From Saccharolobus islandicus REY15A (GTDB lineage: Archaea; Thermoproteota; Thermoprotei_A; Sulfolobales; Sulfolobaceae): DNA of 64,000 bases. Both the position numbers and the translations under genes were made by a program. The notes under the pieces were generated by a model. That model had not been told where the DNA came from, did not search any database, and was given only the letters and a program-made list of their open reading frames with translations. Numbering within the stretch: the stretch's first letter is position 1; each line of letters opens with the position of its first letter. Below, in pieces: positions 48,609 through 64,000 of this stretch. Where the stretch lies: NCBI RefSeq assembly GCF_000189555.1, contig NC_017276.1. The stretch is one strand, 5' to 3'.

Positions 48609-48724
48609 TTCCTTTTTATAATACTAATGAAGTTTTTCGTTAAAATCCAATAGCGAGTTAGTAATTGATACTATCACAATAATAATATAAGTATATTTAC
48701 GTCAGCAGATATATAAAGAGTTTG

Positions 48725-49410
48725 ATGCACGTTTATAAAGTCGAGCTTGATCTTAAGCACGGTTCGTGTTGGACTTATAAGACGTCTAATTTCAAAGTAA
48801 AGGCCGGGTAAAATATCTCTTTCCACTGATAACTAAGAATTCAATTTTCGAAATAGCTGAGATTTACTCCAATGATAAAAACGAACTTTCAGATTTCATA
48901 TCAACAATTAATATGAAGATATGGCAATAATATAAAAGTAGCTAACATAGATAGACCAAGTTCTAGCAAAGTGGCCTTATTGTATTATTTTAAAAATTTT
49001 GACAACTCGGTTACAAGAGTCATAATAGAAAATAACGCAGTCATAACGAACTTATCCATAAGTAATGGAATAGAGGAATGGTATGCGTATTTCTTTGGAG
49101 AAGAGGAAATTCTCTCAAATATATCGCATGGTCTGAAGAGAATAGACGTTAAGGTGGAAAATATTGATATGGAAAAAACTAAGGTAAATGATATAAAAAT
49201 GATCTAGTTATAATTAATTCTTTAACTCCTACAGAAAGGGAGATACTCACAACTGCAATTAGACTAGGGTTCTTCGAATACCCTAAAAGAGTCAGATTAG
49301 AAGAATTGGCTGAGATGTTTGGAGTAACTAAGGTAACTTTAGATAGGCATATAAGAAATGGGTTGAGGAAAATTTTGAGGGGCGATTCAGGTTTCCATTG
49401 CGAATTGTAA
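48725..49410 (+). pseudogene. Bacterio-opsin-activator-type (HTH_10) regulator with three frameshifts
   Basis: Fragments MHVYKVELDLKHGSCW, VKYLFPL, ALLYYFKN and LTPTEREILTTAIRLGFFEYPKRVRLEELAEMFG lie in different frames. Confidence 0.85.
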
Positions 49411-49411
49411 T
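49377..49411 (+). repeat. 35-bp IS-end-like sequence, copy A
   Basis: GAGGGGCGATTCAGGTTTCCATTGCGAATTGTAAT; 32/35 identical to the reverse complement of 60385-60419. Confidence 0.8.
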
Positions 49412-50012
49412 ATTCTCTATGAATTAGAATAATTCAATAAATAAATTATTGTATATATTTCTAATAAAGTGAGAAGGATAAGGGATACTGTAATATTATT
49501 ATAATAATAAGAAAATAAGTTGATAGGTTATAGATATTAGCTATGGTTCGAGCAATCTGGAGCATCCTCCAGCCAGTTATTTATAAACTCTCAATAATTT
49601 GTTCTGAAATTTAAACGTCATTTTAATTAATTTTTGATGAGGTATGGTCTTCTAATACTTTCCTAGTCGTATTTAATCTCAATTACAAATGTTTAAACAT
49701 ACGTTGCAATCCTTGAAGTAACCCGTTGAATATAGCGCTTGGTGCAGTATATTAAAAGGGAAACAATTAACTTGGAGCTATAACTATGTTTGCAGAAATT
49801 ACAATATGTCTTCTTAGCTCCAAACTGCTAAGGTTTCCCTCATCTATTCGGAACTTAAGGAACAGTTGGAAGGCTCAAAGGCACCTTCCCATATATCCAT
49901 AGCAATACGAAGATTTATAACTAAAAGTTTTGCTCCTTATGGCGAGGATAAATAGTGAAACGATATTTGTAAAGTCTAATGTTTTAATACCTTTCTCACG
50001 TTTTCTTCTTAT

Positions 50013-50771
50013 ATGCGTAAATTCTGTGATTTAAGCGGGAGAATAGCCATTGTAACTGGAGGTGCTAGTGGAATAGGAAGGGCCATAGCGTTCAAATTAG
50101 CGAGTCTGGGAGCTACCGTAGTTTTAGGCGATGTAAAGTTAGAGGAACTTAAAAACGTCGTGAATGAAATTACCCAACAGACAGGTTCTAAAGTCGTTCC
50201 CCTTTATGTAAACGTGGGTGATTTCAATTCAGCTAAGGAGTTCTATCAAAAAGCTACTGAGATCCTAGGAATAGATTACGTAGATATTTTAGTAAACAAT
50301 GCGGGGATAAATAGGGACGCCTTATTTGTTAAGATGACTTTTGAACAGTGGGATGAGGTAATGAAAGTCGACCTATATAGTATGTTCAATATGACTAAAC
50401 AAGTTGTTGATGGAATGATAAGAAGAAACTACGGAAGAATAATAAATATGTCGTCAATGAGTTGGTTGGGGAATATTGGACAAGCTAATTATTCAGCAGC
50501 TAAGGCTGGGGTTATAGGCTTCACGAAAACTCTAGCAAGGGAATTGGCTAAATATAACATCACCGTAAACGCTATAACTCCAGGTTTCATTGATACTCCA
50601 ATGACGAGGGCAGTTCCAGAGAAGGTTAGACAAAAAATTATAGAGAGAATACCAATGGGTAGAGTTGGTAGTCCAGAAGAGGTAGCTAATCTAATAGCTT
50701 TCCTATCCTCTGAAGAAGCATCCTACATAACGGGAGAGGTAATAGGAGTTACCGGGGGTTTGGTGTTGTGA
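50013..50771 (+). CDS. fabG: 3-oxoacyl-(ACP/CoA) reductase, SDR family
   Basis: TGGASGIG, NNAG and YSAAK motifs. Confidence 0.88.
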   Translation: MRKFCDLSGRIAIVTGGASGIGRAIAFKLASLGATVVLGDVKLEELKNVVNEITQQTGSKVVPLYVNVGDFNSAKEFYQKATEILGIDYVDILVNNAGINRDALFVKMTFEQWDEVMKVDLYSMFNMTKQVVDGMIRRNYGRIINMSSMSWLGNIGQANYSAAKAGVIGFTKTLARELAKYNITVNAITPGFIDTPMTRAVPEKVRQKIIERIPMGRVGSPEEVANLIAFLSSEEASYITGEVIGVTGGLVL

Positions 50772-56964: not shown

Positions 56965-58368
56965 ATGTATGAAGACATTTGGGCAATTGAACACGCAATA
57001 AGCTTACTGGATTGGGATATCCAAACTTACATGCCCCAATCTGGGATTAAGGCTAGGGGAGAGGCTTTAGCCAGGCTAAGTAACTTAAGGAGGAAATTGT
57101 TGTTAGGCATTAGAGGCGAGATAGAAAAGTTAGAGCCAAAAAATAATATTGAAAAGGGTTTAAAAAGAGTTTTAGATAGAGAATATAAGTACTATGACGC
57201 TGTGCCAGAAGAGTTGGATATGAAACTTCATAGAATAACATCTGAAGCTACTGTAGTTTGGAGAAACGCTAAAGCTAAAGGCGATTTTAACGCATTCAAA
57301 CCTTATTTAGAGCAAATACTTGAGATTAAGAGAGAGATAGCACATAAGCTAGGGTATAAGGATCATCCATATAGTGCACTTTTAGATAGGTATGAAGAAG
57401 GGTTTACTGTCACCGATGCTGAAAGGGTATTCAACGAGTTATTACCCGGTTTGTCTAAGATTCTCAATAAGATCGATGATAAGTTTACTAGAAAATATCA
57501 TTTTGAGGATGAAAAATATGATGTTTTTCAGATGAGTAAAACCATAGAGGCAATAGCTTATGAGGTACTAAAGATGCCTAAGGATAGATTTAGAATAGAC
57601 GTTTCTCCTCATCCTTTCACAGTATCAATGAGTAGAAATGATGTTAGAATAACAGTAAGGTATGAAGGATATGATTTCAAGAGAGTTCTTTATTCTCTAG
57701 TGCACGAGAGCGGGCATGCAATATATGAGTTACAAATAGATCCGAGTCTAGAATACTCTCCTTTAGCAAATGCTCCTTCCATGGGCCTTCATGAGTCGCA
57801 ATCGAGATTCTGGGAAAACGTAGTAGGAAGGAGTTATGGCTTTATTAAAACCATTTATCCCTTGCTAAACGTTAAGGATAGCATTGATGATGTATATTAC
57901 TATGTTAATGGCGTTAAGAGGCAACCAATTAGGGTTGACGCTGATGAAGTTACTTATAACTTTCATATTGCAATCAGATACGAGATAGAGAAGAGGGCAA
58001 TAGAGGGTAGTTTAGAAGCTAGCGAATTCCCCTCACTATTTAATGATTTGATGGACAAATATCTAAATATAAGGCCTAAGAATGATGGAGAGGGAGTATT
58101 ACAAGACGTTCATTGGAGTCAAGGCTCTTTTGGTTACTTCCCTACTTATACATTGGGAAATGTGATAGCTGGTATGGTATACTACCACATGAAGAGTGAG
58201 AGAGGTTTCGATATTAGTAATATAGAGGGGATAAAGAATTGGCTAAGAGAGAGAATTCATAAATACGGAGCAATATATTCACCAAAGGAGTTACAAATGA
58301 GGTCATTTGGTGAGGCATATAACCCATCTAGGCTATTAGATTATATGAGAGAGAAATATAATGCGTGA
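56965..58368 (+). CDS. M32 thermostable carboxypeptidase
   Basis: [17 protein letters not shown] and DVHWS motifs. Confidence 0.93.
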
Positions 58369-58412
58369 TGTGAAATCTCTCTCTGAATGGTGAAGAACTG
58401 GGTCCTTTCTGA
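58365..58412 (+). ncRNA. C/D-box guide sRNA
   Basis: C GTGATGT 58365-71 (contains the upstream TGA stop), 11-nt guide, D' CTGA 58383-86, C' TGAAGA 58391-96, 12-nt guide, D CTGA 58409-12. Confidence 0.75.
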
Positions 58413-58459
58413 CAAAAATATTTTTTACCTTATATCTCCCTTTTTAGTCTATCTTACTT

Positions 58460-58993
58460 TTAGTCATCTTGTTCGTTATCGTCATCATGATGTTTCTTTC
58501 CATGCTCTGCCGTCTGGGTCTGTTGTGCTTGTTGCTCTCCTCCATATTTCACTATTAAGAATGGAATATTACTAACTGACTTTGCCTCAGGATTTTGTGA
58601 TACCACATAAGATATCTTAATGTTTACCGTATAGGTACCCTTGCTAAGGTATAATGTATAGTGCTCCGTTCCGTGAAGTGACAACGTAAAGGTATAATTA
58701 GCAATGTGAATTGTAACGTTAAATTCAGAGAATACGTCTCCTAATACATCTTCTTTTAATTTTATGGTATAAGTACCATTAGCCGAAACAGTAAGAGTAG
58801 CGTTTTCCGTTAATGTACCTTTTTGTCCCGCAGTTAAATTCCCTAAATTGAATGAGGCTAAGGTAGTTTGTATAGTCGGTGAGGTCACATTGTAACTTAT
58901 AGTTCCTAAACTTCCGCTTATTTCCTCTCCAATTACTACACCGCCTACTAATATCGTGCTTAATAATACACCGAGCAGGAGTAGCTTATTCAT
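58460..58993 (-). CDS. Exported beta-rich protein with a His/Asp-rich tail
   Basis: Signal-like N-terminus, NxT sequons, C-terminal HGKKHHDDDNEQDD. Confidence 0.8.
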   Translation of the reverse strand: MNKLLLLGVLLSTILVGGVVIGEEISGSLGTISYNVTSPTIQTTLASFNLGNLTAGQKGTLTENATLTVSANGTYTIKLKEDVLGDVFSEFNVTIHIANYTFTLSLHGTEHYTLYLSKGTYTVNIKISYVVSQNPEAKSVSNIPFLIVKYGGEQQAQQTQTAEHGKKHHDDDNEQDD

Positions 58994-59060
58994 CTTTTCA
59001 CCTACATATTCTCTTGTAAGTTCATCCTTTTAAGGGAGGCGTTCCGGAACAGTGAAACAG

Positions 59061-59849
59061 CTATTTCTTATCGCTCCTTACCACGTACCTAATCTTACCT
59101 TCCTCTCTTATCTCCTCTATATATCCCAACTTAACTAACTTCTTAACTCTCCTATATGCAGTAGATTTAGGTAAACCAGTCTGTCTCACAATATCAGCTA
59201 ATGTATTTGTACCCATTTTTATTGCCTCTAACACAATAGTATCCCTTTCATCCAACACCTCTGGAACGAAATCTACACTTTCCTCTTCTTTCAAAACCCT
59301 AACATTTCCTCTCCTTAGCAAGAATATGATTAGTGAAACTAGTACTGCATTGCTACTTATTAAACCACCTATTATCATAGGAATCTCCAATTCATTTTGT
59401 GTTGTAGTAACATGGGAAGAAAGCGTATAGAGCAATATGACGCTATTTACGTTTGCAAAAGTAACATTATAATAATCACTCATTACATTAAAGCTGTAGG
59501 GCTGTGGAGAAATGTAATTAATAGAGGAGTTAAGAGGTAGATAAATATTGATTGTAGCGTTATATGGCTCATTAATTTGGATAACTCCTCTAGGTAGTAT
59601 GGCATTGTAGTAAATGAAAACAGTAGTATTACTGGGAGTGAGATATAATGTATTTCCGGACAAGTTATATTTGGCTCCAATGATCTTAAGGTTCGTTATA
59701 TTATGCCCTATCAGGACGAATTGATTAACGTTACCAGTAAGTTCAGCCTCTACAGTACCGTTATAATAAATATTTAAGATTGAAGAGTGTGAAATAATGA
59801 CTGGGACCGTTATCAATGGTAAGAGCAATAATAGCAAAATCTTCATCAA
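59061..59849 (-). CDS. Membrane-anchored transcription regulator (external domain, TM, cytoplasmic winged HTH)
   Basis: Signal peptide; TM LEIPMIIGG...LLRR; C-terminal TLADIVRQTGLPKSTAYRRVKKLVKLGYI. Confidence 0.82.
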   Translation of the reverse strand: MMKILLLLLLPLITVPVIISHSSILNIYYNGTVEAELTGNVNQFVLIGHNITNLKIIGAKYNLSGNTLYLTPSNTTVFIYYNAILPRGVIQINEPYNATINIYLPLNSSINYISPQPYSFNVMSDYYNVTFANVNSVILLYTLSSHVTTTQNELEIPMIIGGLISSNAVLVSLIIFLLRRGNVRVLKEEESVDFVPEVLDERDTIVLEAIKMGTNTLADIVRQTGLPKSTAYRRVKKLVKLGYIEEIREEGKIRYVVRSDKK

Positions 59850-60004
59850 ACTTAACTAAATATTAACCAGTTTATTAGCTTAGCGATTTCTAAATATTGG
59901 GTTGTTCAACTTCTCCTTGTCGTTAGGAATTATGCCTTTATCTTATTTTCTATAACTAAAGAAGCATAGGTTCTAAAATCTCCCTTGGAATTCAATTATA
60001 ATTA

Positions 60005-60032
60005 AAACTCTTAAAAATATTTTTAAGAGTTT
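60005..60032. promoter_or_regulatory. 28-bp perfect palindrome in a divergent intergenic region
   Basis: AAACTCTTAAAAATATTTTTAAGAGTTT. Confidence 0.6.
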
Positions 60033-60384
60033 TATGGCTATATGAATCCTTTGCAATAACTATAATGAAATGACTTTTAGTATAATATTATCTAAAAATA
60101 ATTGAAGATAATTAGAATCATGATGCGATAATAATTTGGTATACGTCCTTATATCTCACTTGATCTCCAAAAAGTCCGTTCACTAGTAAGTCCAATAAGT
60201 TCGTAGCTTGCTAACATCTTGATTCTGCAAAAGAATCAGCTAAGAATTTCCAATAACTACTAACGCATCCTTTACGAATTCAGTTTATTTAAAGAATCGT
60301 AATGAATTTAATTAAATACCACCCCACTGACTAGGTGGGATCCACGCTCAGTAGTTTACTTTGTTTTATCCATCTTATTCACAA

Positions 60385-60419
60385 ATTACAATTCGCAAAA
60401 GAGACCTGAATCGCCCCTC
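60385..60419 (-). repeat. 35-bp IS-end-like sequence, copy B
   Basis: Inverted, 32/35 match to 49377-49411. Confidence 0.8.
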
Positions 60420-60533
60420 CAGAAGATGCAATTTACTTTTAACTATTCGCTTCAAGTTTTATGAAAAGGTTTATGATATTAGGTAATTCATGTAGCTCGT
60501 GTAGGTTACTTGATTTGCTATACTTTGACGTAA

Positions 60534-61259
60534 ATGCGTCATTCTAAAGTGTATTGTTTCACTGTTTCATGGAACCAAGGTTTATATGGAATATTCAACC
60601 AATTAGAAATCGTGGATAGACAAACACTCTTGGTAGGTTTGGTAATTATTACCTTAATTATAAATGTAATTTTAGGTGTAGAACTTTATTATACACTACA
60701 CAATAGACCTACTCAGCCAGTAGGTGGAATTCCAATAAATGTCTCCACAGTGCAAATTATCTCTCCGTCTAGTTCAACCACAACTAACACGACATCTGGA
60801 GCAACTTCAACTATCACTACAACTCAGTCCTCTACTACTAATTCTGGATCTTCAACTACTACTAAACAGCCTCAGACCTATTCATTTTCATTTAAGGCTA
60901 AATTTAAGATACACGTTAAAGAACATGGAATATACATTGTTGGTATCAAGCCTAATATAACGTTTTCTCAATTATATGTTATTCTCTATTTTGAAGATGG
61001 TCAAGTGGTAACGTTAAATCTTAACCAAACCTATGTAAATGTAACTATAAAGGAGGACGATGCTAAGGTAACTGCTTATATTTATGGTAAGAGTTATGAG
61101 AATTTGACGCCACAACAAATACTTAACGATATAGGTCTTTACTTTAAATTTATAGGAAACTCCACTAACAGCAACAGTAATGAAAACTCAGATGAGTTTA
61201 TATTAGCTCGTGATATAAATCTAATGAAGAAATTATTTGAAATTCAACCTGTTTTGTGA
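60534..61259 (+). CDS. Membrane-anchored surface protein with a Ser/Thr stalk
   Basis: N-terminal TM, SSSTTTNTTS linker, beta-rich C-domain; true start may be later. Confidence 0.75.
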   Translation: MRHSKVYCFTVSWNQGLYGIFNQLEIVDRQTLLVGLVIITLIINVILGVELYYTLHNRPTQPVGGIPINVSTVQIISPSSSTTTNTTSGATSTITTTQSSTTNSGSSTTTKQPQTYSFSFKAKFKIHVKEHGIYIVGIKPNITFSQLYVILYFEDGQVVTLNLNQTYVNVTIKEDDAKVTAYIYGKSYENLTPQQILNDIGLYFKFIGNSTNSNSNENSDEFILARDINLMKKLFEIQPVL

Positions 61260-61307
61260 AGCGGAACGAATTAACCCTTATATAGGGGAAACGTCCTACT
61301 ATCTCAC

Positions 61308-62960
61308 ATGAAATGGCTAGTTCTCCTACTTCCCCTCTTAACGGTTTTCGGAACAATTCTAATTTCAGCTAGTTCAAGTCCTACAATACACGTGTATTAT
61401 CAAAGATATGATAGTGTATACAGAGCCTCCGGTATTAATGGTCCATTAAGTGCAAGTACAGTAACTTATACTGTAAGTTCAGCTACATACAATACAACCC
61501 TAAGTGACGGCAAAGCGTTTAAGGTAACGTACAATAGAACAGTTTACACTCTATTATTTGCTTCTTCTCCAGAAAAAATTGAGGGATATGTTAACGTATC
61601 AGCTTATACTAATAACACCATTACGATAAAAACTGACTTACCTAATTTAATAAGAATAGTGATAATGAGTGCAAATGAGACAGAATTGATATGGGCTGGT
61701 TTTAATGCTACTGATATTAACGCTTATGCATATATTAATGGAACAGGTGAAGTTATGCTTCAATTCGCAAACGGTTCCACAATAGCTAATGCAACATTGA
61801 CAATTAATAAAGAAAATGTAAGTATAAGCAATAAAATAAGCCTATACTTATTCCCGGTAACATCTGTAGAGGCTAAAGTATCGGTTAGTGGAGAGCTAAC
61901 TGCTACAGCGCAAATACCAAGGAGATATTCTCCATTACTGGTCAGTATTAACTATAATGGCACAGAAAGCAACGCAACTGTTAATGGATATAAGGTTACT
62001 ACAGCGTACTTTAATGGCACACTGACTCCTGCCTTATTTTGGAAAGGAGAAGGCTTAGTTCCAGTAATGTCAGGTAAGGGAAACATACGCGCAGATTTTG
62101 AGACGATAGAATTTTATGGAGTAAATGGTACAATTCTAGGATATGTACACATTTCGAGTATTGTTGGAAATCTAGAGATGATTCCAGTTAAGATTGGACT
62201 TAATTATAACATCGCATTTACTGAACTTAAGATAGTTACGGTAAGTGGAGTAAAACAAGTACATGCCAACTTTATGGGTTACACTTACATTAATAAAGTC
62301 CCAGTAATGATAGTAGGAAACGATGAAGGTAATATAACGTCAACTGCAATCGTTAACATTTCTCATTTAGTCATAGTGAATAATCATAAAGGCGTGCTAG
62401 CGGAAATAACGTTAAATTCAACGTCAAAATTCGTAGTATTAACAGAAGCCAATACTACTCATAATGTTAGTGTAACACTTCCGCTATTGGTAAACGTTAC
62501 CAATGTGCATTTAAACGGTAACGTTCATGTGGCACAGAAGGTCGTAGTCAACGTGTCTTCACAATACATCCTATTCAACGTTACGACGCTTAATAATGGT
62601 TCCATAATTGGCGTCTATAAGGTAGAGAATGATACATTAGTTAAATTAAACTCTTCCAATTACTTCATCATAAATGGAAAACTGGAAATATTTGACGATC
62701 CATCTTCAACATATTATGTAGTTTACTCCGCACAACCAACTACTTCAACGACATCCTCTACTACTTTAACATCTACAAGTACATCTAGTGCATCCACTAC
62801 CGCAAGTGTCTCTACTACTTTAATATCTACGACATCTCCTTCAGCCACATCTAATATAACAGCAACTTCATCATCAAATACTATGACATATATAGCGATT
62901 GGAATAATTGTACTAATAGTTATAATAGTAATAGCCGTGGTGTTAGTTAGAAGAAGGTAA
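61308..62960 (+). CDS. Large cell-surface glycoprotein with a C-terminal membrane anchor
   Basis: Signal peptide, many NxS/T sequons, Ser/Thr linker, TM followed by RRR. Confidence 0.85.
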   Translation: MKWLVLLLPLLTVFGTILISASSSPTIHVYYQRYDSVYRASGINGPLSASTVTYTVSSATYNTTLSDGKAFKVTYNRTVYTLLFASSPEKIEGYVNVSAYTNNTITIKTDLPNLIRIVIMSANETELIWAGFNATDINAYAYINGTGEVMLQFANGSTIANATLTINKENVSISNKISLYLFPVTSVEAKVSVSGELTATAQIPRRYSPLLVSINYNGTESNATVNGYKVTTAYFNGTLTPALFWKGEGLVPVMSGKGNIRADFETIEFYGVNGTILGYVHISSIVGNLEMIPVKIGLNYNIAFTELKIVTVSGVKQVHANFMGYTYINKVPVMIVGNDEGNITSTAIVNISHLVIVNNHKGVLAEITLNSTSKFVVLTEANTTHNVSVTLPLLVNVTNVHLNGNVHVAQKVVVNVSSQYILFNVTTLNNGSIIGVYKVENDTLVKLNSSNYFIINGKLEIFDDPSSTYYVVYSAQPTTSTTSSTTLTSTSTSSASTTASVSTTLISTTSPSATSNITATSSSNTMTYIAIGIIVLIVIIVIAVVLVRRR

Positions 62961-63021
62961 AAATTCTTTTTTAAATGTTTTTGTCCTTTTCCTTTGTTAT
63001 TAGTAGAAAAATTTATATACT

Positions 63022-63036
63022 TTAGGGTTACCCTAA
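63022..63036. promoter_or_regulatory. 15-bp inverted repeat between TATA box and start codon, candidate repressor site
   Basis: TTAGGGT-T-ACCCTAA downstream of TTTATATA (63012-63019). Confidence 0.6.
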
Positions 63037-63042
63037 TACCAT

Positions 63043-63783
63043 ATGAGAGGAAAAGAACTCATAATTGCGCTTTCCATATCTCTCGGAATTGCAGTTGCTA
63101 TATTATCGTTGCCAGATATACTAGAGCCCATAGCACATAAAATATTATTAGTCTTAGGCATTTATTGGCCTTTAGCAATTTTTATAATAGGTATAGTTCA
63201 TGGACTTAAACCTGACGAACATACATGGCCAATTACCGTATCCTATGGAATAATGCAGAGGAATATGAAAGGTGCAATAGTTTCTACAAGCGTTTTCGCA
63301 GGGGCATTAACACTCGTCTGGGCTAGTTTGAGCGCATTGACTGGACAACTTCTCTCATTCTTTCAGAATTACAACTTAGACCCAATAGTAGATGTTATAG
63401 TAGGGCTGACAATGATAGGAGTTGCCTTAATTTTCATTATTAAAGGCAAGGATAAAGTTGTGGATAAAGATAATAATCCAGATTACAAATTAATCTGGAT
63501 TCACGGACTAGCTGCGGCCTTTGGAGGGGATTTTATAGTAATATTGTTATTAACCATTGCCCTAAGTACACTTATTAGTGTGAATGTCACCTTCTTAATT
63601 GGACTATTATTTGGAATAGGTTCATGGATAGCCCAATCCATAGTGGTTTTATTAATATACAAAGGTTTGGTCAAAGGAGTGAAAGCGAATTTCCAAATTC
63701 TAGCTAAGGCAGGGAGGCTATCACTACTATTTCTAGGAATTTTTATGATAGGGTTGGGAATTTTAAGCTCTCTAACCGGTTAA
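63043..63783 (+). CDS. Ni/Co transporter-like membrane protein (NicO/RcnA/UreH-type)
   Basis: HGLKPDEH resembles the HAxxxDH motif; second His motif WIHG; 6-7 TM segments. Confidence 0.65.
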   Translation: MRGKELIIALSISLGIAVAILSLPDILEPIAHKILLVLGIYWPLAIFIIGIVHGLKPDEHTWPITVSYGIMQRNMKGAIVSTSVFAGALTLVWASLSALTGQLLSFFQNYNLDPIVDVIVGLTMIGVALIFIIKGKDKVVDKDNNPDYKLIWIHGLAAAFGGDFIVILLLTIALSTLISVNVTFLIGLLFGIGSWIAQSIVVLLIYKGLVKGVKANFQILAKAGRLSLLFLGIFMIGLGILSSLTG

Positions 63784-64000
63784 AAATCTTTTATACTCTT
63801 TTCGGTCAACTTCGCAATAGCCTTTCTTAAAACTTGCATTATGGCTGGTTTAGAAATACCCAACTCATTTGCTAACTCCTCTAGTCCTATTCTTTTAGGC
63901 GTTTCGAAGTATCCCTTATCAAAGGCTAGCTTCAGAATTGATAATTCCTTAGGCGTTAGCTCTTCCTTTACTGAAAGGAGTGGATTTGAAGATTCCTCAA
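63780..64000 (-). CDS. HTH_10 (bacterio-opsin activator type) regulator, C-terminal part; absent from the ORF track
   Basis: Manual translation ELTPKELSILKLAFDKGYFETPKRIGLEELANELGISKPAIMQVLRKAI...stop; gene starts beyond the window. Confidence 0.88.
   Translation of the reverse strand, partial: EESSNPLLSVKEELTPKELSILKLAFDKGYFETPKRIGLEELANELGISKPAIMQVLRKAIAKLTEKSIKDF

Follow-up and report, generated by a model that had tools for sequence, protein, structure and literature searches.

A predicted membrane-tethered regulator and a promoter element shared by its neighbouring exported-protein genes in Sulfolobales

We analysed a stretch of 64,000 nucleotides of Saccharolobus islandicus/solfataricus DNA (the window) and focused on the locus at 58460-63783, which encodes a putative transmembrane transcription regulator together with exported proteins and is collinear with its counterpart region SSO3098-SSO3104 of S. 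solfataricus P2. To our knowledge, Crenarchaeota are without two-component systems, the coupling of the outside of their cells to transcription is largely obscure, and ArnR is essentially the sole membrane-bound regulator that has been studied. Based on comparison of related loci, we suggest that a membrane-tethered one-component regulator probably controls the surface proteins flanking it through arrays of half-sites shared by their promoters. The gene architecture, the synteny, the paralogy of two exported proteins and the conserved motif shared by the promoters were observed directly. As judged from the genomes compared, the conserved unit is a triad of Sulfolobales genes, not a five-gene system. 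The regulator belongs to an uncharacterised family within a known class, the transmembrane one-component regulators, and is distinguished by an unusual domain order and a predicted regulon. Literature searches on SSO3098-3105 and the corresponding UniProt identifiers found no publication on these genes, and the module is not described in the Makarova papers on archaeal dark matter and membrane proteins. The locus is a compact test case in the genetically tractable S. islandicus REY15A, with a sizeable ectodomain, a mutable predicted operator and three candidate targets.

The first-pass annotation, which was made from the sequence alone, had described five open reading frames (ORFs) as one envelope module, and all five were recovered, positions and strands included. 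The minus strand carries a 177-aa ORF (58460-58993) encoding sec177, the SSO3104 orthologue, which is a secreted jelly-roll protein according to its ORF, hydropathy, orthologues, AlphaFold2 (AF2) model and Foldseek matches, and the regulator ORF (59061-59849), the orthologue of SSO3103. The plus strand carries ORFs of 241 aa (60534-61259; p241, SSO3100 orthologue), 550 aa (61308-62960; p550, SSO3099 orthologue) and 246 aa (63043-63783; perm246, SSO3098 orthologue). The regulator shares 98-100% identity with proteins of S. islandicus and with SSO3103. We gathered related loci by genome scan and exact-protein look-up and compared them by tblastn and hidden Markov models (HMMs); they include L007 (S. 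solfataricus P2), L001 (Saccharolobus), L004 (strain HS-7), L010 and L011 (Sulfurisphaera ohwakuensis), L005 (Sulfolobales archaeon Acd1), L012 (Acd1-type) and L006 (Desulfurococcales). The triad, formed by the regulator and proteins of the 177-aa and 241-aa types, was present in 10 of the 11 regulator loci (the window, L001-L005, L007, L010, L011 and L012), and sec177 orthologues lie beside the regulator in nine loci other than the window. Since L011 is a second record of the L010 locus, the ten represent nine distinct triad loci. Six distinct loci share a canonical order, in which the anchored gene is followed divergently by the regulator and then by the secreted gene. The triad genes of L002, L005 and L012 are rearranged yet still adjacent. 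L002 keeps the divergent anchored gene, its main secreted gene lies beyond the anchored gene on the opposite strand, and a shorter second paralogue is found downstream of the regulator; in L005 and L012, the secreted gene is on the other strand upstream of the anchored gene, which is co-oriented with the regulator. The sole regulator locus lacking the triad is L006, where the Desulfurococcales homologue is 35% identical. The 550-aa protein was found only in Saccharolobus (L001 and L007 besides the window), and the permease gene adjoins the triad only in that genus and is about 7 kb away in Acd1. A comparison of gene neighbourhoods, proposed earlier as a check, therefore supports synteny of the regulator with two exported proteins across Sulfolobales, but the five-gene set is not syntenic beyond Saccharolobus, and p550 and the permease fall outside the unit.

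We then examined the regulator, which most likely starts at ATG 59846 and comprises 261 aa. Hydropathy revealed an N-terminal signal-like hydrophobic segment (aa 1-27) and a second hydrophobic span (aa 156-179), which is followed by RRG..R in agreement with the positive-inside rule. All seven N-X-S/T sequons lie within aa 30-128, N-terminal to the transmembrane (TM) span, and none is found within that part of the protein which forms a winged helix-turn-helix (wHTH). The AF2 model, built on 20 homologues, shows an all-beta ectodomain at residues 22-143 with a predicted local distance difference test (pLDDT) value of about 90, a TM helix at residues 155-180, a low-confidence linker, and a wHTH at residues 201-257 with three helices and a beta wing (pLDDT about 88-91). 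Residues 200-256 scored above the Pfam cut-offs for HTH_IclR (36.7 bits, cut-off 22), MarR_2 (31 bits, cut-off 27), TrmB (27.8 bits, cut-off 25.6) and HTH_24 (25.7 bits, cut-off 21.9). Because the Pfam matches, hydropathy, sequon placement and AF2 model agree, we assign the protein as a single-pass type-I transmembrane transcription regulator (TTR), with a predicted topology that places the ectodomain, probably N-glycosylated, outside and the wHTH in the cytoplasm. The architecture proposed earlier, with an external domain, one TM segment and a cytoplasmic wHTH, is thus borne out by prediction. Homologues occur in Saccharolobus, Sulfolobus spp., Sulfurisphaera, Acidianus, Metallosphaera, HS-7, Acd1-type Sulfolobales and unclassified Thermoprotei, and none of the 58 homologue matches came from S. 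acidocaldarius. The start of the mature ectodomain, YYNGT (residues 28-32), which contains an N-glycosylation sequon, is invariant in 20 of 20 aligned homologues, the recognition helix TGLPK.TAYRRvKKLVKLG is nearly invariant across the family, and the TM helix keeps a conserved polar position. A Foldseek search with the ectodomain gave weak matches to M1 aminopeptidase N-domains, which we judged uninformative, and hhalign found no homology between the ectodomain and sec177, p241 or p550, the p550 match covering only the signal peptide and first strand.

The regulator resembles the TTRs ToxR, TcpP and CadC, which are likewise single-pass proteins with an external domain and a cytoplasmic winged helix in one polypeptide, and the small membrane-anchored partners ToxS and TcpH are encoded adjacently, as p241 is to the regulator. 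However, ToxR and CadC carry an N-terminal wHTH of the OmpR type (Trans_reg_C), then the TM segment and a C-terminal periplasmic domain, whereas the order is reversed here, with signal peptide and ectodomain first and the wHTH last. The wHTH is of the MarR/IclR/TrmB type and not the OmpR type, with no Pfam match to Trans_reg_C in the regulator; the beta ectodomain with YYNGT is unnamed, and there is no sequence relationship to ToxR, TcpP or CadC. ArnR reportedly has an N-terminal helix-turn-helix (HTH), C-terminal TM helices and little external mass, and the regulator would differ from it in its 120-aa ectodomain and C-terminal wHTH. ArnR and ArnR1 of S. acidocaldarius are nevertheless also membrane-bound one-component regulators of surface-structure genes, namely those of the archaellum and pili, and have been studied in Sulfolobus (PMC6396743). 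In addition, a survey found transmembrane transcription regulators to be widespread in archaea and enriched in Thermoproteota (PMC10269533). The first-pass annotation had considered the module noteworthy for lying in a group without two-component systems. That absence is real, and a search of the five locus proteins for histidine kinase (HisKA/HATPase_c) or receiver domains gave no Pfam or NCBIfam match at E up to 1, but two-component systems are the wrong yardstick, membrane-bound one-component regulators being already known in these organisms.

A shared cis-element, which had gone unnoticed in the first-pass annotation, connects the promoters of the triad. Upstream of sec177, the element TGTTTCACTGTTCCGGAAC lies at 59059-59041 on the minus strand, 2 nt past the regulator stop codon, and 6 nt further on is the TATA box CTTAAAAGG at 59034-59026 (promoter 59026-59059); the sec177 ATG is preceded by a GGTGA Shine-Dalgarno motif. 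Upstream of p241, the element TGTTTCACTGTTTCATGGAAC lies at 60555-60575 on the plus strand, followed after 5 nt by the TATA box TTTATATG at 60581-60588 (promoter 60555-60588). Because orthologues begin with M(E/A)RQ..LL and this operator and TATA box lie downstream of ATG 60534, p241 almost certainly starts at GTG 60612 and comprises 215 aa (60612-61259). This GTG is only 24 nt past the TATA box, and the p241 transcript is thus probably leaderless. The pattern TGTTTCACTGTTYC-N0-3-GGAAC occurs exactly twice in the window, at these two promoters, and never in 100 shuffles. When clusters were defined as at least three GTTYC/GRAAC half-sites within 32 nt, the window contained three against a shuffle mean of 0.28. 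The arrays include the palindrome GTTCC-N0-2-GGAAC and end 4-8 nt upstream of the TATA box, and the element recurs at orthologous promoters of Saccharolobus, Acidianus, Sulfurisphaera and strain HS-7. Clusters are present in the divergent intergenic regions of L001, L002, L003, L004, L007 and L010 and upstream of the sec177 orthologues of L002 (both paralogues), L003, L004 and L007, so that L002 is marked at all three promoters; upstream of the secreted gene of L001, a two-half-site version was seen by eye only. In the regulator loci of canonical order, clusters are found almost only at triad promoters. The p550 promoter (61250-61292, plus strand), which was compared in the window, P2 and L001, has a degenerate copy, TGTTTTGTGAAGCGGAAC, followed after 9 nt by the TATA box CTTATATAG at 61277-61285 and by GAAAC at 61288-61292, and the same position holds GTTTCATGAAGCGGAAC in P2 and TTCCGGAAC in L001, giving three Saccharolobus lineages in all. 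The element at the sec177, p241 and p550 promoters would be the comparative signature expected under control by the regulator. The third window cluster (49833-49863), with an ORF resembling short-chain dehydrogenases (50013-50771) about 150 nt downstream of it, is probably due to chance because its spacing differs from that of the operator.

The regulator has a core promoter of its own, the 16-mer CGCTAAGCTAATAAAC (TFB recognition element (BRE)/TATA box; 59870-59885, minus strand), which is the same in the window, L001 and L010. It is centred about 29 nt before the ATG, which is why the regulator transcript, too, is probably leaderless. The operator half-site GTGAAAC lies directly beside it in L001 and L010, and in the compact loci generally, the array is placed between the divergent TATA boxes of the anchored gene and the regulator, the intergenic region being 93 bp long in L001 and 79-114 bp in L002, L003, L004 and L010. 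Since the array abuts the regulator's own promoter in these compact loci, autoregulation is suggested there. In the window and P2, a non-coding insert of about 670 bp (59886-60554), which is missing from L001 and the other compact loci, parts the regulator core promoter from the shared operator; in this way, the regulator may have escaped autoregulation. P2 shares the insert at 97-99% identity, and an insertion sequence with a DDE_Tnp_1 transposase has inserted within it there. It contains no ORF of at least 50 aa, the small ORFs of the 760-bp intergenic region are nothing convincing, and an Rfam scan of 58300-64000 gave no match at E up to 1. A sigma-70 promoter scan returned 18 sites against 24.8 expected, from a model that is uninformative for an archaeon. 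The palindromes noticed earlier in the intergenic DNA are real, and they are of two kinds: the short GTTCCGGAAC (59046-59055) is part of the conserved sec177-promoter element, and the perfect 32-nt palindrome (60003-60034) lies in the lineage-specific insert, outside the conserved module. Within the insert, 35 nt (60385-60419) are 91% identical in reverse orientation to 49377-49411, the 3' end of a decayed HTH_10-type gene, and the translations correspond (..RGDSGLFCEL* in the insert and ..RGDSGFHCEL* at the C-terminus of the decayed gene). Possibly, the insert is what is left of an HTH_10 regulator gene that has been lost. The decayed gene itself (about 48971-49411, plus strand; bacterio-opsin-activator-like) is broken by stops and a frame change and retains a 78-aa ORF and the HTH_10 C-terminal domain TEREILTTAIRLGFFEYPKRVRLEELAEMFGVTKVTLDRHIRNGLRKIL; the 78-aa ORF is the sole one of at least 60 aa in the stretch 48609-50012 (about 1.4 kb).

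Based on these observations, we propose that the regulator would bind the half-site arrays as a dimer or higher oligomer while tethered to the membrane, with its occupancy set by what the ectodomain meets outside the cell, and that it would thereby control sec177, p241 and, in Saccharolobus, p550. Activation is favoured over repression by a very small degree because the site lies just upstream of the BRE/TATA elements. The earlier idea of a module that senses the outside and controls a surface structure accordingly gains from the TM one-component regulator, the synteny and the shared motif, but not in its five-gene form. Among single-pass membrane regulators, regulated proteolysis is an established route, and the membrane form might be an inactive precursor from which signal-triggered intramembrane or juxtamembrane cleavage frees the wHTH, possibly for many genes; the local motif would then make up only part of the regulon or be a site for another factor. 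The TM segment and the wHTH are joined by a linker that is short (about 20 aa here, up to about 60 in the family), poorly conserved and of low pLDDT, which is compatible with such release. However, we consider it very unlikely, with no conserved protease gene in the neighbourhoods examined, and the transmembrane regulators that have been characterised in archaea, like many of those in bacteria, function without leaving the membrane (PMC6396743, PMC10269533).

The two exported proteins of the triad are related to each other, which the first-pass annotation had missed. In sec177, the signal peptide is followed by an N-terminal strand that is conserved (..LGTISYNV..) and by a beta core, and the protein ends in a disordered His/Asp/Glu tail (...AEHGKKHHDDDNEQDD), as expected from the earlier description of a secreted His/Asp-tailed protein co-oriented with the regulator. 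In p241, an N-terminal TM segment precedes a Ser/Thr-rich stalk, and a jelly-roll domain and an acidic tail follow; its earlier description as a stalked surface protein holds, and it is the listed ORF (from 60534, 241 aa) that needs a corrected start and length. When the two families were compared by hhalign, the probability was 95.6% (E 1e-8), rising to 96.8% (E 2e-10) with a 63-member profile, and the family HMMs match each other reciprocally, so that we regard sec177 and p241 as paralogues from sequence. p241 differs from sec177 in three respects. First, it retains the N-terminal TM segment. Second, a Ser/Thr stalk is inserted. Third, the first strand (..LGTISYNV..) is lost. In both families, the tails are usually acidic and often His-rich and vary in length and composition. 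An exhaustive profile search of the sec177-type family yielded 98 clusters at 50% identity. sec177 has no Pfam match and no meaningful sequence match in the PDB, a FimA match (E 0.016) being dismissed as driven by the signal peptide, and a Pfam search with 63 family members gave scattered sub-threshold PKD or Ig matches only and none to PF12389. Some relatives (P0227, P0265, P0266, P0283 and P0288) carry two or four sec177-type domains in tandem on an N-terminal TM segment and Ser/Thr stalk; these are without the N-terminal strand and have no regulator nearby, and one further clade of the domain occurs in a non-Sulfolobales context, also with no regulator nearby. The locus of one tandem-domain relative (L013 695-2590, a metagenome contig) adjoins a thermopsin-like gene. 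Annotated lengths of p241 vary across strains (221, 236, 241, 247 and 265 aa). SSO3100 of P2 (L007 5231-5940) matches window p241 at residues 4-213 and then at 214-240 in another frame, and this frameshift difference sits in a hydrophobic extension after the acidic tail.

The AF2 model of sec177 shows a nine-strand core (pLDDT about 88) with a low-confidence N-terminal strand. In a Foldseek search, every match was a jelly-roll, all with E-values of 1e-3 or weaker, and the top TM-scores were obtained for Pyrodictium cannula subunits, 7uii (CanA; 0.46/0.45) and 9h8b (CanX; 0.47/0.54). sec177 and p241 weakly resemble jelly-roll subunits of the cannula/TasA superfamily, a likeness which had been overlooked earlier. 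CanA, CanX and CanX-like proteins are, like sec177, secreted jelly-rolls of about 150-180 aa with a Sec signal and no chaperone or peptidase gene nearby (PMC12518558), and the similarity of sec177 to the CanX/TasA superfamily is at fold level only (TM 0.46-0.54, E about 4e-3). Published CanX-like proteins, three of which come from S. solfataricus, are reported to be concentrated in Sulfolobaceae and Thermocladiaceae (PMC12518558), and the distribution of the sec177 family, Thermocladium included, agrees with this. Comparable combinations of genes are found elsewhere in archaea. The haloarchaeal Tafi loci encode a membrane-integrated putative regulator, TafB, beside the secreted jelly-roll pilins TafA and TafE, and TafF, in which a related jelly-roll domain comes after a single TM helix, has been proposed as a membrane anchor (PMC11821415, PMC12337348). 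The triad therefore shares with them a membrane regulator, secreted jelly-roll subunits and a TM-anchored jelly-roll protein. However, the dedicated signal peptidase, DUF5305 protein, tip protein and Tat signals of Tafi are absent from the window locus, and TafB, unlike the regulator here, has two TM helices and is mostly cytoplasmic, with no sequence homology shown. Similarly, the ABP operon of Pyrobaculum combines a wHTH regulator with an N-terminally anchored beta protein, as the triad does (PMC9245690).

Most likely, then, the exported paralogues would build or decorate a cell-surface structure. With lower confidence than for the regulation, we suggest that sec177 might polymerise on anchored p241 in the manner of TasA-superfamily filaments, where p241 would be the membrane base accepting a strand donated by sec177, as in TasA-superfamily or cannula-like polymers; such a role fits with the finding that the N-terminal strand is conserved in sec177 and missing from p241. 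Should the paralogues turn out to be cannula/TasA-like subunits, the locus would also be a first entry point to the regulation of matrix or surface polymers in Sulfolobales. The TM segment is the best-conserved part of p241, with a mean column identity of 0.72 against 0.54 for the domain and a motif, TL..NV.LG.ELY, in which the polar residues N, E and Y are invariant, and this conservation would allow p241 to be an intramembrane partner of the regulator. It follows that p241, perhaps with sec177, might serve as a co-sensor that stabilises or gates the ectodomain or TM segment of the regulator, as in systems of the ToxR/ToxS, TcpP/TcpH or VtrA/VtrC type, and that the motif would keep the stoichiometry of the complex. 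The conserved polar position in the regulator TM helix, the retention of the triad as a unit and the adjacency of divergent genes, which is known for accessory proteins of transmembrane regulators (PMC10269533), agree with this. However, the module has two paralogues, of which one is fully secreted; the domain family is also found away from any regulator (Thermocladium, the tandem-array proteins and the non-Sulfolobales clade); and the regulator ectodomain has no homology to the paralogues detectable by hhalign. We regard a co-sensor role as rather unlikely, and it would be compatible with control of the flanking genes by the regulator and not exclusive of it. A more speculative version, which we consider improbable, combines the two ideas into a self-monitoring surface-polymer module, in which sec177 would donate its strand to p241 and the ectodomain or TM segment of the regulator would read whether the anchor is free or occupied and adjust both genes. 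If true, promoters would be under the direct control of a checkpoint for extracellular assembly, a type of circuit that is not known from archaea.

Here, we need to consider several points that weigh against our proposal. Binding of DNA by the regulator, its effect as activator or repressor, the signal it receives and the formation of a polymer are all predictions, and the link between motif and regulator is guilt by association, so that another factor could bind the arrays. In the Acd1-type loci (L005 and L012), the motif is weaker, with fewer half-sites that lie partly downstream of the TATA box, and a Thermocladium genome encodes a 177-aa type protein without the regulator. As for the surface polymer, the cannula resemblance is weak (E about 4e-3, rmsd about 12 Å), and generic jelly-rolls are similar by E-value. 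HMMER searches of the PDB with the family profiles A2 and A3, at E up to 10, recovered no CanA, AbpA, thread or TasA chain. SSO3104 was not confirmed as one of the three published S. solfataricus CanX-like proteins. Finally, because covalent tandem arrays without the N-terminal strand exist (P0227), the fold may be complete without a donated strand.

Outside the triad, p550 is predicted to carry a signal peptide, a Ser/Thr stalk and, at its C-terminus, a TM anchor, along with 26 N-glycosylation sequons, in line with its earlier description as an anchored glycoprotein and as judged from its ORF and hydropathy, and it belongs to DUF8424 (PF28525) through the recorded Pfam match of the 98.5%-identical P2 orthologue. 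It is a Saccharolobus-specific accessory gene and possibly a regulon member. Large C-terminally anchored proteins are also encoded beside the triad in L004 and L010 and in L006, and they are unrelated to p550. In HS-7 (L004 5214-9309), the triad abuts an ATP-binding cassette (ABC) transporter, recognised by eye from translations as an ATPase and an FtsX-like permease, whose genes enclose a 734-aa C-terminally anchored protein (L004_734). This protein is related (E 1e-18) to the 629-aa L006_629 (L006 6715-8604), directly upstream of the Desulfurococcales regulator homologue, and the regulator family may have an accessory set of another kind here. No significant link to the sec177/p241 family was detected for the 147-aa protein encoded downstream of the L006 regulator homologue.

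perm246 is a permease with about six hydrophobic spans, according to its ORF, hydropathy and family alignment, and belongs to an unnamed Thermoproteota-wide family. In this family, HG..PD.HTWPIT (H53, D58 and H60) is invariant with E59 nearly so, and the His (H154) and Gly of HGLAAAFGGDF are invariant. Homologues with 50-85% identity occur in Sulfolobales, Caldivirga, Vulcanisaeta, Thermoproteus, Acidilobus and Conexivisphaera, none of them Pfam-annotated. The earlier label of a NicO/RcnA-like permease stands only as a likeness at the level of the LysE superfamily: perm246 gave no match to Pfam NicO (PF03824) at E up to 1, none of the Pfam and NCBIfam families reached its cut-off, and the LysE match (E 2.9e-4, 20.8 bits) is below the 25.6-bit cut-off. 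Like NicO/RcnA, UreH-like and LysE-superfamily permeases, it appears to have about six TM helices with His/Asp/Glu motifs inside them, but its motif is H-x4-D-E-H and not a classical NicO/RcnA signature. The gene has a TATA promoter of its own without half-sites, behind a T-rich terminator. The Acd1 permease (L005 17639-18370) is 84% identical to perm246, and the Acd1 regulator and both paralogues are only 36-37% identical to their counterparts, which suggests horizontal transfer or a much stronger constraint on the permease. perm246 is plausibly a metal permease of the LysE superfamily and a neighbour not tied to the regulator module.

These features bear on the metal-capture idea of the first-pass annotation, in which the regulator would sense external metal, the His/Asp-tailed proteins bind it and the permease move it. 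Many orthologues of both paralogues do have His/Asp/Glu-rich tails, the TM-helix motifs of the permease resemble HX4DH-type Ni/Co transporter signatures, UniRef gives UreH-like or RcnA-like names to distant relatives (E 1e-13), and the permease gene adjoins the triad in Saccharolobus and is no more than 7 kb from it in Acd1. However, the permease is missing from most triad loci and its family is common where there is no triad, the permease and regulator of Acd1 (84% and 37% identity) appear to have separate histories, and the tails vary in length, with several lacking any His (EENSEGNS, AENS, GEGED). Since the five genes are not one unit and the permease promoter is without the motif, the idea comes down to variable His/Asp tails and an unlinked neighbour, and we consider it poorly supported and very unlikely to explain the module.

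With regard to the remaining neighbours, the genes to the left of the locus are unrelated housekeeping genes encoding an M32 carboxypeptidase, a dihydroxy-acid dehydratase and TatA. To the right, the 3' part of an HTH_10 regulator gene (63783-63998, minus strand) is convergent to the permease gene and ends at the window edge. The fragment is 100% identical to residues 149-220 of a 220-aa P2 protein, and it represents a second regulator beside the locus.

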